Of a stretch of 64,000 nt of DNA, positions 46,455-57,630 are shown piece after piece. The DNA comes from Setoptus koraiensis (lineage: Eukaryota > Animalia > Arthropoda): NCBI GenBank assembly GCA_048013815.1, contig CM106586.1, forward strand, positions 24,304,001-24,368,000, read 5' to 3'. Both the position numbers and the translations under genes were made by a program. Positions within the stretch are counted from its first letter, which is position 1; each line of letters opens with the position of its first letter. The notes under the pieces were generated by a model. It saw only the letters and a program-made list of their open reading frames with translations. It did no database searches and was not told the DNA's origin.

Positions 46455-49400
46455 CTAATTTAATTTCATATACTTTGCTTTACCAACGGATCGCCGCTGT
46501 GTAGGATAGTATCTGTTTGGTGACATTCTACTTGATCCCGATTGAAAATGTGCTTCATAATTGCGGTTGCCTACCGAACGATAATCGGGCTTGCTGCTCG
46601 ACGAGTAGCGTTTTGAGGAAGACATGTCACCGTACAAATCTATAAAATCGTCAACGTGAATGGATGGAGGCCTGCTCGTGTTTTGTGGCCGCGATCTAAA
46701 TGAATCTCCTCGATTGATAAGACGCCCGCGACCGCGCAGAGGAGCTACGTATGGCCTTTTTGAACCACTTGGCACAGAGAGTTCCTTACTATTATGAGGT
46801 GTGTAATCAAACTTTTTAGAAGTTTCTGTACTGCGATGGGTACTTGATTTGATATCCATTAGAACTTTGAATCTGTACGATTTTCTCAAGCTGGACACAA
46901 GGTCGAACCTGTCTGAGCCTCTTCTTGTTAAATCCAGAAGATTGATCTTAACTGCTCTCTCCGGCGGAATTATTGGATTTTCTTCTGCAAAATTGGGCTT
47001 ACTGAGATCATTTGCTAAGACTTTCATAGATTTTAAAAAGGTCTATAAAGAGAATTTAAATGTAAAAAAGAGTATTATATAATAAAAAAAGAGTCTTCAA
47101 CATGAAGATGGCGGCTACCCGGTTATCTATTTACTTATATACTTACGTCAACCGTTGTGATGTTGCTGTTACTATTGCTTGCAGATAATAGCTCGTCGAT
47201 TCGCTCGGATTTGCTCAGAGCACAAAGGAACTTGATGAGATTTAGTAAAGTTTGATTGATTTTTTCGTCTTTCTTGCAGTTAACCTGTGTGTGGTTGGTC
47301 AAAGCAGACTCGAAAGATTTGTTCGTCATTAGAGCAGCCAAAAAGTTGAGTGTCATCCGTGTGGAGTAGGCGTTTTCTTTATCGTCATTGAACATGGTAC
47401 AAGAATGGTTGATCAAGGAATCAAACACACTTTTGACAACAATACAGGCTGTAGTAGTGGATAAATCACAAAGCTGATTGCACAAATACAGTAGTAGGGT
47501 CCTGATTCTTGGCTGGCAACTAATGCTAAAGTAGGATATCATCTGTTCAATTTTGCTATGGAGAGGATGTAAGTGAGCACTCCAAAGTTTACGATGATTG
47601 ACATGTTTGAATAATTGATCCTGATCTAGTGATTCGAGGGTATTATTCAATTGCAGGGGCTTTGGTAGTATCTTGGTGAATATTTCCAGACCATTGTAGA
47701 AAAATATTGGTGCAGACAAAGTGAAATCTATTATTTCTTGTAGCATCTTGGCCCAGACACTCTTACTGATGACTTTTTCTTCTGAAACACTGAGACACAT
47801 CTGAGTGTAACTCTTTAATGTGCATAGTATTAGGTACTGAATTTGTTTGGCTGAGTAGCAATTGACATTGTTTGTGTCAATCAAATTAAAACTTGAAATC
47901 TGCATAGAGTGTGCCTCGCTGTCAATATAATACGATTTTGGTACGAAACTTATCAACGAATATGTCTCTAGTATCACAGAAATAGCACTTGTATCTTTAA
48001 ATTCGCTCCCTCTCGCATCGATAGAATGGCTCACAATAGATTGAATAAGCAGGACTACACTTTTGATGAATGATAGAACCAACTGACCTTTGAGGCCCCT
48101 GAGGGCTGCGCTTTGATAAATTGGTTTTGAATAATTTCCGTTGAGCTCTTTTAGAATAACTAGTAATCTTTTGAGTCCTTCATGTTCAAAAACTTGAGTT
48201 ATGCCATAATGATACTTGAGATTACCGCAAACTTCTTCGTCATAAGGATAGAATAATTTGGATGTTGTTGTTTCGACATCTTCAAAAATCTCATCCTCTT
48301 TATAATTAAAAGAATCAACCTGTCTCTCCCCATTTGCATCTTCTGTATCTGTGTTGCAATGGTTTGATAGATATGGCTCAAAATGTCGTCTGCTGTAAGT
48401 ATCTGGTATAGACTCAAGGAACAGTTCTACTTGAGGCGGTATACATAGTTGACGGAGAATCCTTATTGTCGTTATGAGCTGGCTCGGTAACTTGAAATCC
48501 AAGCCATCGGCGAATGGTTTTGAATGGGTCGGAATACTTCTTCTAACCACTCGTAACAGTTGCTTAAATGATTCTTCAGAATAATTTATCATATGACATG
48601 GTCGATCTATATCGAAAGGTGTCAACCATTGTAGTAGGGGCCTGACTCTTACTGCTATAGCACTATTATTTTTGCACAAGTCGGTCATTGTCTCCAGATA
48701 TTCATCAGACATCTCCAGTACAGATTCATTTAACTGAAAGAACACTTCTAAGATTTCTAATGAGTATTCAATACATGTCTCCTTGTTGAATTCACTGTCC
48801 ACCTCGCGTTGAATATCTGGCATCTCCAAGAATCTCAGTAGGCAGTCCAAATTTCCTCCACATGAGAAATGCTTCAACAGTGCCTCTCTACCGTATGGAT
48901 GATCGGACAAGATGAATATTTGATGTAAAATTGGCTCAGGGACTGCATCTTCTGGTATCGTATCTCCACTGATAACCTCCCTATGAAAATCGAAAAGCTT
49001 ATCGATACAGTAGTACATCTTGAAACTGTACGCAGATTTGATTCCCAAGTTGTAGTATTTCGAAGCAATATGATTTTGGGGTGATTCCTTATTGACCCCA
49101 GTTGAACTTCCGCGATCTTTCAAGTCGGTGTTTGGTTTCAACAGTAGTATATCGAGGAGGTTGTTGGTGCTTTCTATGAAATCGGACGAAAGAAATAAAT
49201 GCAGACCCCTCGGCGAAGACAATAGAGCTCTAACAAAGTTTAAACACAAGTCTTGCACTTGAATGTGAGCCTCCTTCTCATCATCTGGGTGGTCGTATTC
49301 TGTTTTCCTTAAATGCTGCAGTGCATCATTGATCTTGTCTAATGTTCTGAAATGTTTTATCCATTTATAAACAGCCATGTATGGATCTAATCTACATGGT

Positions 49401-52393: not shown

Positions 52394-53682
52394 ATTGGAT
52401 TAGGTTACTCTGTCTCGTTTTCCGGATGACCCTCGGCAGCATGTTGAGTCATAGAGTTTTGGGTCTTACAATTAATGTCGAGGCATTTTACGACACGCCG
52501 ACCCACACCACGTTCTAGGCCTCGGCTTTGTAAAGGGTGTGTTGAGTGCAGGTACTTTCTATGGACGAAAGTGACCTGTACTGCAATGAGCTGAAAAGCG
52601 AGTCTGTCGCTGTGGCGTTACTATCATGCCGCGTCAGTCACGCCTCTTCACTTGTGCCGCGCCGGATACCTGGATTAAAAGCGCACTCGGTCATACCATT
52701 ATAGGGAATTCATCGACAGATAGCCCCTTTCCTGATGACACCAATTCTTACCTGACTCTGAATCTGATCTCTCTGAACTCCCCTGTTCCCACCATCAATG
52801 ACCGGACTCTCTGGAGTAGTCTCATATACAGTATTGTATTAGTTAAACCGTGCGGACTAGGGGTCGGGTATTTGCATCACTCTGGTCGTGACAGTTTTAA
52901 TCATACCCTGTTTGTGCATCGAAACAACGCTTCCAAAATCACTCTCTTCTTGCGAAACATCCCTCTAGGATCCTAAAATGATCCACTCACGTCGCATCTA
53001 TCCGATTCATGTACTTGCCGACATTTTTCATTCGTTGATTATCAGTTATATTTACATCATCCAGAATGTAATATAATAATAGATGTACACGGACAAGAAT
53101 ACAGAGCTATGGGGATTGAACTTCGAAATCTGAGCGCTCAATTCAAAGACATGTGATGCAGTGCGTCATATGCATATCTAGCACATGCTGCAATCAACAA
53201 CGGTCCAAGTTGTTTTCAGTTGTAGCCCCTTCAAATCTTGCCTCGTCCGCAATGGTATCGCAGAGGATAGTATTCCGAGCATCCTTTATTACTGATGATA
53301 TCGTTTTATATTATTTTTCCAAATCATTGAAAACACTGAACTTTAATTCTTAACAGAGATTATCACCGTCACTTTCATGCTTTGTTTTTAAATCTGGCGC
53401 AACGAAGAAGAGAAAAAACGTAGACAAAAAAGATCCAGTTTGGTAGTAGAATCGCCTTACAGTTGAGTGAATATATTTATATGAAAATACTCGACTCTAA
53501 ATAGTTTATACTCATGGTTATAAACTCATTTCGAGATTGAACAAGATATTATAAGAGGTCGCAATACTCCCAGACTAATTAGAGTGTTGAATCCACAACG
53601 TGAGACAAGCTCTTGGCGAGGGCTTCATCAAAAATCTTCCGTCAAATAGAATTCACAACATTGACCCGTAAATTCGATAGAT

Positions 53683-54914
53683 ATGGTTAATAATATCAAT
53701 AAGAGCAACAGTAAAGATGTGAGAATTCTGCTCGTGGGTGATGGTAAGTTACAAAACAAAAAAAGTCTCCCTAATGTTCGTTATTAGTCACCAGCATGAC
53801 GCTAAAATACATCATGTTTCATCCGTTCTCATCCCAATTACTATCATCAGCCGGAGTTGGTAAAACCTCTCTCATATATTGTCTAGCCAATGAAGTATTT
53901 GATGAAGATGTTCCACCTCGAATGGCCGAGATCACAATTCCGGCTGAAGTAACTCCACAACATGTGCTGACGCATATAGTCGATTTTTCAGAGCGAGATT
54001 CATCAATGAATTTAGTAGAAGAGATAAATAGATCCTGTGTTATCTGTTTGGTCTATTCTCTGAAGGATGAAGAGAGCTTGGCAAGAGTCGGTTCATATTG
54101 GATGCCCTTCATTAGAGGAAGCCAAAAAGATGCCAGTCGACTCAAGCCAGTCATACTTGTTGGTAATAAATCAGACCTAGTTGATTCACCACCCTTGGAT
54201 GAGCTGACTTCGATCATAAGTGCTTACGAAGAGATAGAAGCCTTCATTGAAGTATCTGCAAGAGCTCAATTGAATATACCCGAACTTTTCGTATCAGCAC
54301 AAAAGGCTGTTCTATACCCATTATCACCTCTATATGATTCTCACAAACGTGCTTTAACAAAAAAATGCCGTAACGCCCTAACGCGTATCTTCAAATTATG
54401 TGATGAAGATGAGGATGGATTACTTAGTGACCATGAGTTAAATCTCTTCCAGAATAAATGTTTTGGGACACCGCTTCAAAAAGAAGCTCTAGACGACCTG
54501 AAAGTAATCATTAAACAAAGTATGATGGACGGTATCATAGACAATAGATTAACACAAGCAGGATTTCTATTTTTACATGTATTGTCCATAGAAAAAGGAA
54601 AGCACGATATCACATGGACATGTCTAAGGAAATTCAATTACGATGACGAAATAGTTGCTACCAAGTCCTCATCCTTTGGAGATGATGATGCCACAAAGAG
54701 TTCGATGACCTCTGTAGGATCTTGTGCCACTACTTCTATCTCAATAGATCCGAACGATCCAAAAATCACATGGATACAGTCTCAACTAAATTCATTCCAT
54801 AACTGTTTCAACAATATGGATGTACTCTTTAAGGCAGGGGTCAGTTTAGCTGCAGCTACTGTTCTTGGAATCGTTCTGTTAAGATATATGGCACTCAAAA
54901 GGACCATGAAATGA
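53683..54914 (+). CDS. Miro: Mitochondrial Rho GTPase Miro, shortened form; join(53683..53743,53851..54914), 374 aa
   Basis: KDVRILLVGD-AGVGKTSLI, EITIPAEVTP, LVGNKSDL, AQKAVLYP, EF-hand DEDEDGLLSDHE, GFLFLH..HDITWTCLRKFNYDD and tail anchor LFKAGVSLAAATVLGIVLL. The 107-nt phase-1 intron has a GTAAGT donor. Confidence 0.93.
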
Positions 54915-56259
54915 GCACACTCACATCGACGTTGATACGTTCATGATATTAGCAAGGGTGTTATACTGACAAGAAATATTTAGTCCTACTGAAAATGTAA
55001 AAAGATCAGAAAGATGGGAAGTTGGTGTGTACAACGAACGTCTCTAACTTATTTTTGAATTCATGATGAGTGGAATTCAAAGTAGCTTGTCATTTTATAG
55101 AGTCCTCACTTAATTAAAACAAAATGGCTAAGGCTGCCGTAGTTCTAGATCAATACTAATCCGAGTGCAAAAGAGCCAGACTCGACATACTAGAGCCCGC
55201 TTTACTATAGCAACGTGAATTAGGCATTTTCAGTAAATTCGTTACCTGAGTGAAAACTTGATTGCCAGTCTACCGATACATTTGGGCAGAAAGCAGTCTC
55301 TATATTGATTTTTAGAATAGATTGTCCACCAAAGAATGAGTTCAAACAGAAGGCTCACATACATACATCATTATGACCGAAACCCACATAAGTCAGATGT
55401 ATTGTTCACAAATGAATACTGATCATTGTTAGTCAACTGTGAACAAAAATGGTGGATCTCAGACTGTGGAATTCATAGCATTCTCCTAGACATCGATTAT
55501 CAAGAAAATGAATGATGTTTGAACTTTCTTAAGCGAAACAAGTGCTGAGATACCTGTACATGAAATGGTTTGTATTCATGTAGATCATTTCTCATACTAT
55601 ACAACACATTCTGTAGCTCCCCCAAGCGGGCAACAAATGAACTTGAGTGAATCGAAACTGACACACGGTAAAGAGCTGGTAGAGGCACAATATTGGAATT
55701 ATCTGACGAATACAGCGACCCACTATTACATTTACCACCACTGGAATACTTGGAATAATAATATATTCACATTATCTAACATTGTTTGGGGAAAAGAAAA
55801 AAGGAGTTTTATTCCACATAATTCTGAATTGAAACCACAAGTTATATGCAGTCACCAAATTCGAAAGGATTGGTCTATCAGGATTTTGAGCATGATTCCA
55901 ACAAAATGAAGGCATTTTTTATAATCCATGTTGCAGGTACTTACTAGACTCAACAAAAATACAACGTGGTATTGTAGAAATATCGAGGAAATTCGATTAA
56001 TTATTGGCGATTGCAAAAGAACGGATTCTTTTCCCTGTCTTATTTGAGGAGGCTAATATATTGGAAATTTCGACACAAAGACAGTATTCAGGCCACAATC
56101 ATCAGTGAATTTATTGTTCTAGTAGGGAGCTGGAAGTGTATCAGAGCAGCCGCCGCAACGTCTTCTAAGCATTTCCAGGCTCCGTCGGCCTCCAAGACGC
56201 CTTATAGACGCCGATTTAAGCTACCATCGATACTCCGTCGTTTTAAGTTGAGCAACTTT

Positions 56260-57630
56260 ATGGAATATTGCGTGATAGCTTTGAATGAGGCCTCATGTTC
56301 CACAGCAAACAGGTTGGATTTGCTTAATTGTGATGGACCTGTTTGGTTTCTCGGCCGCCTATACAATCTGCCACAAGATCTTGATGATTTACAGGGCGAT
56401 ATAAGATCTAAGTTATGGATAACATATCGACGCAATTTTCCGCCCATTGTTGGGAATGCTCGTTACATCACAGACAAAGGTTTCGGTTGTATGATTAGAT
56501 GTGGTCAGATGGTACTAGCCAATGCGCTGATCTATAAAGATTTAGGCCGTCAATGGAGATGGAAATCTAACTCTGTAGATGAGAATCCTCAAGCCTATTT
56601 GAATATCCTCAAGCTCTTTCAGGACAAAACTGAATGTAAATATTCCATTCATAACATCGTTCAAACTGGACAGCAGGAAGGTAAAGCAATAGGAGAATGG
56701 TTTGGCCCGAATACTATAGCACAGGCGCTGAAAAAGATGTCTAAACATGATAAAATTTCTATCGAGGTCGCTCTGGACAATGTTATTGTAACAGATGAAA
56801 TACGTTCAAGTTTCAAGAGAGCAACCAGCAAACGAGACTTGCTACCATCCGCCGATGGTAATAATACTGATGTTGAATGGGTTCCATCTATTTTGTTCAT
56901 ACCATTACGATTAGGATTGACCAAAATCAATCCATTGTATTTTGATGCCTTGAAAAAGACCTTCCAATTTAGACAGTCCCTAGGTATTATTGGTGGTAGA
57001 CCTAATCATGCACTCTATTTGGTCGGGTTCACAGATGATGACATAATTTACTTGGACCCACATAAAACACAACAATATATAGATTTTGATGCCCAGGCCC
57101 CTATCGACCAGAATGACCAAAATTCCTCCTTGGCAATCTCCACTAGTCAAGCGATATCAAGTTCACTTGGTTTTAGTTCCCCTAATTCATTATCTGACGC
57201 CACGTATCATTGCGAGGGAGCTGAAAAAATGTCAATAGAACGACTGGACCCGTCGATAGCTCTTTGTTTCTACTTTCATACAGAGGAAGAATTTGATGAT
57301 TGGTGTGATGTATCTAATGAATGTCTTATCAATGGAGAACAACAACCGATGTTTGAAATTACAAAACAGCGTCCACCTCATTGGGCTACATTGCCGAACA
57401 ATCTACTTACAACTACAAACAATTCGAACACCCATTCAGAAAAATTAAGTCAATCTAATGGTTCTAACTCTCTCCGGACTGACCACGATTCCGAAAAGTT
57501 CACGCTTTTGAAGGAAGAGAAAGAACAAGTTGATTCTTCGAAGTTCGAACTTACGAAATCGTATTCACTCGAACCTAACGATGTTATGCCTTTTCATGAT
57601 GAAGATGAAGAGTTTGAGATGCTCGGTTGA
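56260..57630 (+). CDS. ATG4: Autophagy cysteine protease ATG4 (ATG4A/B-like), 456 aa from the first in-frame ATG, intronless
   Basis: PVWFLGR, LWITYRRNF, catalytic DKGFGCMIRCGQM, GEWFGPNT, GIIGGRPNHA, YLDPH (catalytic D and H) and a C-terminal LIR-like EEEFEML. The true start is uncertain. Confidence 0.93.
   Translation: MEYCVIALNEASCSTANRLDLLNCDGPVWFLGRLYNLPQDLDDLQGDIRSKLWITYRRNFPPIVGNARYITDKGFGCMIRCGQMVLANALIYKDLGRQWRWKSNSVDENPQAYLNILKLFQDKTECKYSIHNIVQTGQQEGKAIGEWFGPNTIAQALKKMSKHDKISIEVALDNVIVTDEIRSSFKRATSKRDLLPSADGNNTDVEWVPSILFIPLRLGLTKINPLYFDALKKTFQFRQSLGIIGGRPNHALYLVGFTDDDIIYLDPHKTQQYIDFDAQAPIDQNDQNSSLAISTSQAISSSLGFSSPNSLSDATYHCEGAEKMSIERLDPSIALCFYFHTEEEFDDWCDVSNECLINGEQQPMFEITKQRPPHWATLPNNLLTTTNNSNTHSEKLSQSNGSNSLRTDHDSEKFTLLKEEKEQVDSSKFELTKSYSLEPNDVMPFHDEDEEFEMLG

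Follow-up and report, generated by a model that had tools for sequence, protein, structure and literature searches.

A probable tail-anchored half-Miro in Setoptus koraiensis and its eriophyoid relatives

Miro, the protein that hooks mitochondria to the motors of the cell, has to our knowledge been treated as universally a scaffold of two GTPase domains and two EF-hand/ligand-mimic modules (ELM1 and ELM2), with the role of its C-terminal half a matter of debate. A gene of the small plant-feeding mite Setoptus koraiensis raises the question of whether an animal Miro may do without that half. In a 64,000-nucleotide stretch of the genome (assembly GCA_048013815.1, contig CM106586.1, positions 24,304,001 to 24,368,000 of the forward strand; the whole stretch is called the window here, and positions are counted from its first letter), the gene at 53683..54914 on the forward strand encodes 374 residues in the order N-terminal GTPase (nGTPase), ELM1, linker and tail anchor, with ELM2 and the C-terminal GTPase (cGTPase) cleanly absent, an architecture that had been proposed from the letters of the window alone (the original prediction) and that was borne out by Pfam, by structure matching and by tblastn. 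We consider it probable that this protein is an eriophyoid-mite Miro, a tail-anchored half-Miro composed of nGTPase, ELM1, a flexible linker, a juxtamembrane helix and the ancestral anchor.

Domain content and predicted structure of the half-Miro

From the N terminus, the domain order was found to be a Miro nGTPase, a complete ELM1, a disordered linker rich in acidic residues and Ser, a juxtamembrane helix and a Miro-type tail anchor. The nGTPase (residues 1-176, human MIRO1 1-168; 53683..54317 on the forward strand, containing the intron of the gene) was recognised by the Pfam Ras profile in the 374-residue protein (E 5e-13) and matched the structures 6d71 and 9e2p, the comparison with the human MIRO1 nGTPase 6d71 giving E 3e-43 and a Foldseek template-modelling score of 0.82 by target. 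Its signatures are kept as the GDAGVGKT P-loop, ITIP, NKSD and SAR, with SELFYY degenerated to PELFVS. ELM1 (residues 191-282, human 183-274; 54360..54635, forward strand) comprises EF-hand 1, a hidden EF-hand and the ligand-mimic helix HDITWTCLRKF, and was supported by Pfam EF_assoc_2 (E 6e-18, profile positions 1-63 of 87), by a weak EF-hand_7 match, by Foldseek and by AlphaFold2. The Ca2+-binding loop of EF-hand 1, DEDEDGLLSDHE (54402..54437, forward strand; human D197-E208), is canonical in alignment to rodent MIRO1, and both this loop and the P-loop proved on motif alignment to be intact, as had been predicted. The best solved-structure match was human MIRO1 9e2p (E 7e-83), confined to human residues ~15-284.

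Neither EF_assoc_1 nor a second Ras domain was found by Pfam in the 374-residue protein. When 11 full-length Miros were searched by tblastn against the whole 64 kb, their residues ~10-290 matched 53838-54677 (E 1e-80 to 1e-88) and their last 25-40 residues matched 54783-54905 weakly (E 0.04-0.7), and no remnant of ELM2 or the cGTPase was found in the window, the sole matches of these two domains being paralogous ones to EF-hand 1 and the nGTPase of the same gene. A disordered, Ser/Thr/Asp-rich linker (residues 292-323; 54663..54758, forward strand), delimited by low AlphaFold2 confidence and by its variability in the family, stands in for the ELM1-ELM2 linker, ELM2 and the cGTPase. It is followed by the juxtamembrane helix (residues 324-344; 54759..54821, forward strand), which AlphaFold2 models as part of a long helix and which bears a family-invariant Trp (ITW), and by the transmembrane tail anchor (residues 345-369, VLFKAGVSLAAATVLGIVLLRYMAL; 54822..54896, forward strand), after which come KRTMK and the stop codon. 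The anchor is a hydrophobic segment of about 25 residues (Kyte-Doolittle maximum 2.1) that stops five residues short of the C terminus; it has a basic end and a KAG.G motif that occurs also in the Miro tails of Lingula (SSWLLKAGLGI) and Capitella (LWIKAGVGI), and the juxtamembrane Trp (W307 of the 353-residue query) was invariant in 38 of 38 aligned sequences, full-length Miros included. Judged by these alignments, the tail of the half-Miro is the ancestral Miro anchor, homologous to the tails of full-length Miros, and it would be expected to direct the protein to the mitochondrial outer membrane.

The break was located with rodent MIRO1 (P0090) as a ruler, in which 24 of the 24 residues named in structural papers stood at their published positions; human residue n corresponds to window residue n+8 over residues 5 to 282. 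Published limits place the nGTPase at 1-168, ELM1 at 183-274, ELM2 at 303-384, the cGTPase at 416-579 and the transmembrane segment at 590-618, with ELM1 consisting of an EF hand, a hidden EF hand and a ligand-mimic helix (PMC10746525). Because these limits and the n+8 offset place the ligand-mimic helix within the part that is kept, ELM1 is complete, and the break lies at its domain boundary, inside the ELM1-ELM2 linker. A missing ligand-mimic helix, as the stop of the EF_assoc_2 match at 63 of 87 might suggest, was rejected, since the human helix HETTWTVLRRF has its counterpart in the half-Miro; the unmatched end of the profile is the ELM1-ELM2 linker.

In an AlphaFold2 model built with the family alignment, the pLDDT score (predicted local distance difference test) had block means of 75-94 in the nGTPase and 94-98 in ELM1, and fell to 30-37 over the 32 residues of the linker. 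A one-turn helix (DDEIV) follows ELM1 ahead of the disordered stretch, and the juxtamembrane segment (~21 residues) and the transmembrane domain form a single long helix (model residues 303-352); the model of a typical family member (P0007) behaved in the same way. The top Foldseek match of the half-Miro model was 9e2p, here as the MIRO1-TRAK1 Site-2 complex (E 1e-24), and ELM1 superposed on 5ku1/4c0j with a root-mean-square deviation of ~1.0 A over 100 columns. The linker had been put at ~55 residues in the original prediction; its Ser/Thr/Asp-rich composition holds, and its length divides into ~32 disordered residues (292-323) and a predicted helix of ~21. Docking of a linker [DE]D[FLY] motif back into ELM1 was considered and rejected, the motif being disordered in both AlphaFold2 models.

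Gene structure, transcription and selection

The coding sequence runs from the ATG at 53683 to the stop codon at 54912-54914 and comprises two exons, which splice to 1125 nt and encode 374 residues. Exon 1 (61 nt; 53683..53743, forward strand), read from the sequence and found as the same exon in a related species (L004, below), encodes residues 1-20 and the first base of codon 21, MVNNINKSNSKDVRILLVGD|A, its end reading ...LLVGD plus one base. The intron of 107 nt (53744..53850, forward strand; GTAAGT...CAG) interrupts the P-loop, with GD|A in exon 1 and GVGKT in exon 2 (53851..54914, forward strand), which carries the rest of the P-loop through to the stop codon. The single exon that had been predicted from the P-loop onward is hence real only from GVGKT to the stop.

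This structure was matched by contigs from sequencing run X7, which were restricted to the transcribed parts of the half-Miro gene and of the next gene, with nil coverage over 55211-55945. An exon-only contig begins at 53562 and gives the 5' untranslated region (UTR) a minimum extent of 53562..53682 (forward strand); one contig joins 53742 to 53850, removing 107 nt with GT..AG ends, exactly the length of the intron; and a contig of 54417-55138 contains ELM1, the linker, the transmembrane segment, the stop codon and a 3' UTR of at least 54915..55138 (forward strand), all colinear with the genome. Run X7 was taken to be transcriptome-like from its exon-only coverage and spliced contig, and with its RNA nature inferred in this way the data show an intact half-Miro gene that is spliced and gives a transcript of the short form; this is also the outcome of the transcript check that had been proposed for this locus. 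Run X4, from another study and under another organism label, gave a single contig over 53300-57700 with 2 single-nucleotide polymorphisms. If a collapse, a mis-join or missing exons in the assembly or annotation had concealed a gene that is truly full length, neither this independent DNA contig, colinear over the gene, nor the transcript-like X7 contig, which passes the stop into the 3' UTR, would be expected, and the related loci described below speak further to this point.

Runs X7 to X9 contain 39-66% of the sampled words of the window. Two raw RNA-seq runs under the species label of X7 (X17 and X20) had zero reads at the half-Miro locus and provide no test of its expression; the species label of X7 is probably that of a host or of a mixed sample rather than that of the mite.

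The Logan contig L004, from a related species, is 79% identical in nucleotides to the window over 4.7 kb and has the same neighbours. The half-Miro there is likewise built of the two exons and 374 codons, with zero indels relative to the window, while the intron has diverged with indels (43% identity). The Nei-Gojobori ratio of nonsynonymous to synonymous substitution rates (dN/dS) between the two was 0.08 overall at a dS of 0.47, and the separate regions gave 0.06 (nGTPase), 0.07 (ELM1), 0.32 (linker) and 0.045 (tail). These ratios show strong purifying selection on the half-Miro and lie far from the value near 1 that the original prediction had named among its refuting conditions. A truncated Miro pseudogene, decaying and keeping its open frame by chance, would fit the poor conservation of the linker (omega 0.32) and the loss of part of the canonical protein, but such a remnant is very improbable, given the overall dN/dS with not one indel in 374 codons, an architecture kept across a deep clade, an intact P-loop, ITIP, NKxD, EF-hand 1 loop and anchor, and a gene that is spliced and transcribed. 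The duplicated ATKSS that had been noted in the linker is real in the protein, but its codons differ and L004 reads VANSS/VTKSS at this place, hence it is not a recent duplication of DNA.

Two stretches of the locus stand out in the comparison with L004. Across 54380-54560 (codons ~201-260) the DNA is 98-100% identical, compared with 82-92% in the remaining coding sequence, and dS is as low as 0.045 in codons 201-240, where codons 1-160 have ~0.7 (Fisher p ~1e-4). This stretch has an RNA fold z-score of just -1.68 and holds no antisense open reading frame of at least 60 residues; its near-frozen synonymous sites could reflect constraint at the RNA level, an antisense transcript or local gene conversion. 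Within the transcribed 5' leader, the block 53600-53659 is 88% identical, compared with 43-73% in the adjoining non-coding DNA, and it may be a conserved 5' UTR or promoter element.

Relatives, phylogeny and gene neighbourhood

A word-index protein search returned 30 proteins of 373-420 residues that are 41-59% identical to the half-Miro and cover 77-100% of the query (most of them at least 98%), where full-length Miros mostly cover just 75-84%. The search had a length window of 194-618 residues, outside which the full-length Miros of arthropods (626-668 residues) lie; within that window no short Miro was found in the database from named non-eriophyoid mites, a result that is silent on long forms. 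In the alignment, all short forms share the ELM1 end HDFTWQVLRKFNYDNQ, an acidic/Ser-rich linker, the invariant Trp and the anchor IKAGLG.T.ATLLS.LALRYL with its basic end; the linker varies across the family in length (45-75 residues) and in sequence, and the cGTPase is absent from all 30 relatives. One further candidate (P0031), either as a short form or as a fragment of a full-length mite Miro, was rejected as a chimeric fragment of canonical Miro. The comparison with orthologues in related mites, which had been proposed as a check, in this way found the short form in L004 and in 30 relatives. The X4 contig, L004 and the 30 homologues all have the same junction, and no collapse or mis-assembly was found there.

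A Miro tree was computed from the N-terminal 282 columns with 32 short sequences (the window, L004 and the 30 relatives). The short sequences form a single clade, with a Shimodaira-Hasegawa-like approximate likelihood ratio test (SH-aLRT) support of 100 and a stem of 1.0 substitutions per site, which groups with barnacle and crab Miro inside the metazoan Miros (support 88), and the window and L004 are sister to the other 30. By its place in this tree, the half-Miro is a descendant of the Miro lineage, without the canonical two-GTPase architecture. A protein that FastTree placed as sister to the short clade (P0399) was rejected as such, being from the annelid Dimorphilus gyrociliatus and drawn there by long-branch attraction.

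The identity of the clade was read from the neighbouring gene, an ATG4 peptidase at 56260-57630, downstream of the half-Miro. Its search returned ~38 relatives at 46-61% identity and, besides these, Aceria tosichella (Eriophyidae), with the next named matches (41-45%) in Leptotrombidium, Dinothrombium, ticks, Tetranychus and Dermatophagoides. Together with Aceria, these relatives make up one clade of the ATG4 tree (SH-aLRT 100), in which Aceria is nested deep and the window lineage is basal. Because the short Miros form one clade, and because the clade of the linked ATG4 genes includes Aceria tosichella, the trees show that the half-Miro architecture arose before the sampled eriophyoid mites first diverged, ELM2 and the cGTPase having been lost once. 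The internal deletion of the original prediction is upheld in its extent, ~300 residues being absent, and revised in its age, as it is neither private to this species nor recent but ancient in the sampled eriophyoids (30 homologues and the trees).

At two of the related loci (L085 and L086) the short Miro has ATG4 430-600 bp upstream of it and, ~130 bp past its stop, an ENTH gene, which leaves no space there for further Miro exons. No ELM2 or cGTPase was found within 8-10 kb at L001, L004, L085 and L086 when the C-terminal halves of five full-length Miros, one of them from a spider, were searched by tblastn; in the window and at these four loci, full-length cGTPases matched just the nGTPase region, as paralogues. 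With the identical structure in L004, 30 homologues that terminate alike, the next gene close behind the stop in L085 and L086, and no Miro-like coding remnant in either the window or the flanking DNA of the four loci, all added to the colinear contigs of X4 and X7, an artefact of assembly or annotation is hardly conceivable as the source of the short form.

Miro and ATG4 remain linked throughout the mite clade, with varying orientation and intervening genes: the two are in tandem in the window and L004 and are divergent neighbours in L085 and L086, L001-L003 have AAR2 and a TYW4/LCM gene between them, and the gene next after Miro is an ENTH gene in L085, L086 and L001. Elsewhere in the window, an open reading frame of 190 residues (46455-47027, reverse strand) lies between DBC1-like and virilizer-like genes; it is found at the same place in L004 and had no Pfam match.

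Functional sites, competing readings and meaning

In canonical Miro, the hydrophobic ELM1 leucine/phenylalanine-binding (ELF) pocket takes Leu/Phe motifs of CENPF, Trak, MYO19, MTFR1/2/1L, VPS13D, Parkin and yeast Mdm34, aided by a salt bridge of R263 and by a trans beta-strand on IETCVE (PMC10897228). The predominant TRAK1 site, Site-2, lies in the nGTPase-ELM1 cleft, and Site-1 is a pocket between ELM2 and the cGTPase, the two domains through which Miro also dimerises (PMC12227652). Motor recruitment is set by the state of the nGTPase, with cGTPase mutations of little effect (PMC9615026). S156 in SELFYY is a PINK1 site (bioRxiv 729251), and K572, the lysine prioritised by Parkin, is in the cGTPase (PMC5015425).

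Of the cleft residues, L24, F159, F217, L221 and L257 are invariant across the mite family, and I40-P43 (ITIP) and L254 are nearly invariant. Conservative changes are seen as V229L, V232I, M128L, M135I and V145I; the family retains R263, which is Lys in the window protein. The loss of the C-terminal half has taken with it the pocket for TRAK Site-1, the dimer interface formed by ELM2 and the cGTPase, the second Ca2+ site and K572, and in the nGTPase S156 is replaced, by V, I or P across the family. On the reading of the protein as the mite Miro, the anchor would insert post-translationally into the mitochondrial outer membrane, the linker would serve as a flexible spacer that keeps the nGTPase-ELM1 unit off the membrane, and this unit would use its conserved cleft and pocket to recruit clients with Leu/Phe motifs. 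One Ca2+ site (EF-hand 1) and one nucleotide site would be left as possible regulators, and the half-Miro would work without the Site-1 contact, dimerisation through ELM2 and the cGTPase, or the cGTPase-based handle for PINK1/Parkin.

Whether the half-Miro is also the only Miro of these mites is a separate question. Arthropods normally carry a single Miro gene. Eriophyoid genomes are extremely reduced (PMC7738191). We lean towards the half-Miro being the only Miro of eriophyoids, this being the more economical reading because the short clade adjoins arthropod Miros and because the genomes are so streamlined, and it would then most likely have come about by the streamlining of genomes and domains that is typical of the clade. 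The alternative is that a full-length Miro persists elsewhere in the eriophyoid genome and that the short gene arose by duplication long ago and serves a more restricted role or another one, such as that of a competitor or decoy for clients of the ELF pocket or of the Miro of another organelle.

Several observations weigh against the simpler account. Elsewhere in the genome there may still be a Miro of full length, or ELM2 and the cGTPase in a gene of their own, the searches having covered the 64-kb window, the flanks of four loci and representative proteins rather than the complete assembly, and the length window of the protein search would conceal arthropod Miros of full length. The long stem of the short clade fits a change of function as well as the fast evolution of mites. 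The client surface has changed family-wide at Y160 (to S/V), Y161 (to T/S/A), C144 (to F/Y) and F258 (to S), of which Y160, Y161 and F258, together with S156, would suit a paralogue, and client binding may differ from the human model. Run X7, for its part, is not registered as RNA.

A specialised paralogue is nevertheless unlikely in our judgement. The short clade is placed among the arthropod Miros, as an orthologue would be, and its one apparent sister in the FastTree analysis was the long-branch artefact described above. When an ELM2-cGTPase profile was run against 1.84 billion representative proteins, 2266 matches were returned; among the best 150 of these, no N-terminal half was nearer to the short forms than that of any other metazoan Miro (maximum 51%), and matches that contained only the C-terminal half were open reading frame fragments. 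A second copy maintained throughout the history of the clade is also less economical, given the usual single Miro of arthropods and the reduced genomes.

Further candidates for a full-length Miro of mites were set aside. P0095, as a fragment of such a protein, was rejected as louse Miro, and P0035 was likewise set aside. Two metagenome contigs of 9-11 kb and 40% GC (L016/L017, Ga0210059_1015773 and JGI24022J15233_10014846) carry an intronless canonical Miro of ~618 residues; as an eriophyoid paralogue this was rejected, its closest relatives (68%) being a non-arthropod group, and the source in these metagenomes is, by its Miro sequence, a compact-genome animal of another kind. A metagenome scan with the N-terminal patterns EEFP..VP and EEITIP[AP]D, to which eriophyoid Miros do not conform, recovered not even the known short loci and was uninformative.

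Compared with canonical metazoan Miro (human MIRO1/RHOT1 and MIRO2, Drosophila dMiro), the half-Miro is homologous in its nGTPase and ELM1, with ~50% identity over human residues 5-282, and shares the canonical EF-hand 1 loop, ITIP, most residues of the cleft and ELF pocket, the juxtamembrane Trp and the KAG.G anchor. Unlike canonical Miro, it is without the ELM1-ELM2 linker, ELM2 (EF_assoc_1) and the cGTPase, a ~32-residue disordered stretch standing where there would be ~300 residues, its SELFYY is degenerate (S156 and both tyrosines gone) and F258 of the ELF pocket is Ser. The same two domains make up the engineered GTPase1-ELM1 fragments of MIRO1 (Covill-Cooke et al. 2024, PMC10897228), but these are human laboratory constructs without an anchor, whereas the half-Miro has a native tail anchor and has been selected in an animal clade. 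MIRO-like proteins without one GTPase domain are described from trypanosomatids and ciliates (PMC4810086); by that review's description they are natural and have a reduced domain set like the half-Miro, but they are protist rather than animal proteins and represent independent events. In yeast Gem1, which is itself full length, its first GTPase domain and its first EF hand are needed for association with the ER-mitochondria encounter structure, via the ELF pocket and Mdm34 (PMC10897228, PMC4810086), which agrees with the N-terminal half as the docking unit of the half-Miro, and the second GTPase domain is needed for phospholipid exchange (PMC4810086). We found no account in the literature of a metazoan Miro that lacks both ELM2 and the cGTPase. 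Miro, Milton, PINK1 and Parkin go unmentioned in the paper on the genome of Aculops lycopersici and in 200 of its 225 supplementary files.

The half-Miro is a natural deletion experiment in an animal clade, and it agrees with the structural work that sites the main docking of clients in the nGTPase-ELM1 cleft and the ELF pocket. It is also one more example of how the smallest arthropod genomes have been streamlined at the level of domains. For studies of rescue, binding and structure it offers a minimal Miro that is compact and has been tested by evolution, and it raises the questions of how Ca2+-dependent arrest would operate with one EF hand, how TRAK would be bound without Site-1, and how turnover of the PINK1/Parkin type would proceed without K572 and S156. 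If the half-Miro is the sole Miro of these mites, transport, contact-site and quality-control functions would run on the nGTPase, ELM1 and anchor alone, and ELM2, the cGTPase, TRAK Site-1, dimerisation through ELM2 and the cGTPase and the cGTPase handle for PINK1/Parkin would be dispensable for animal life.

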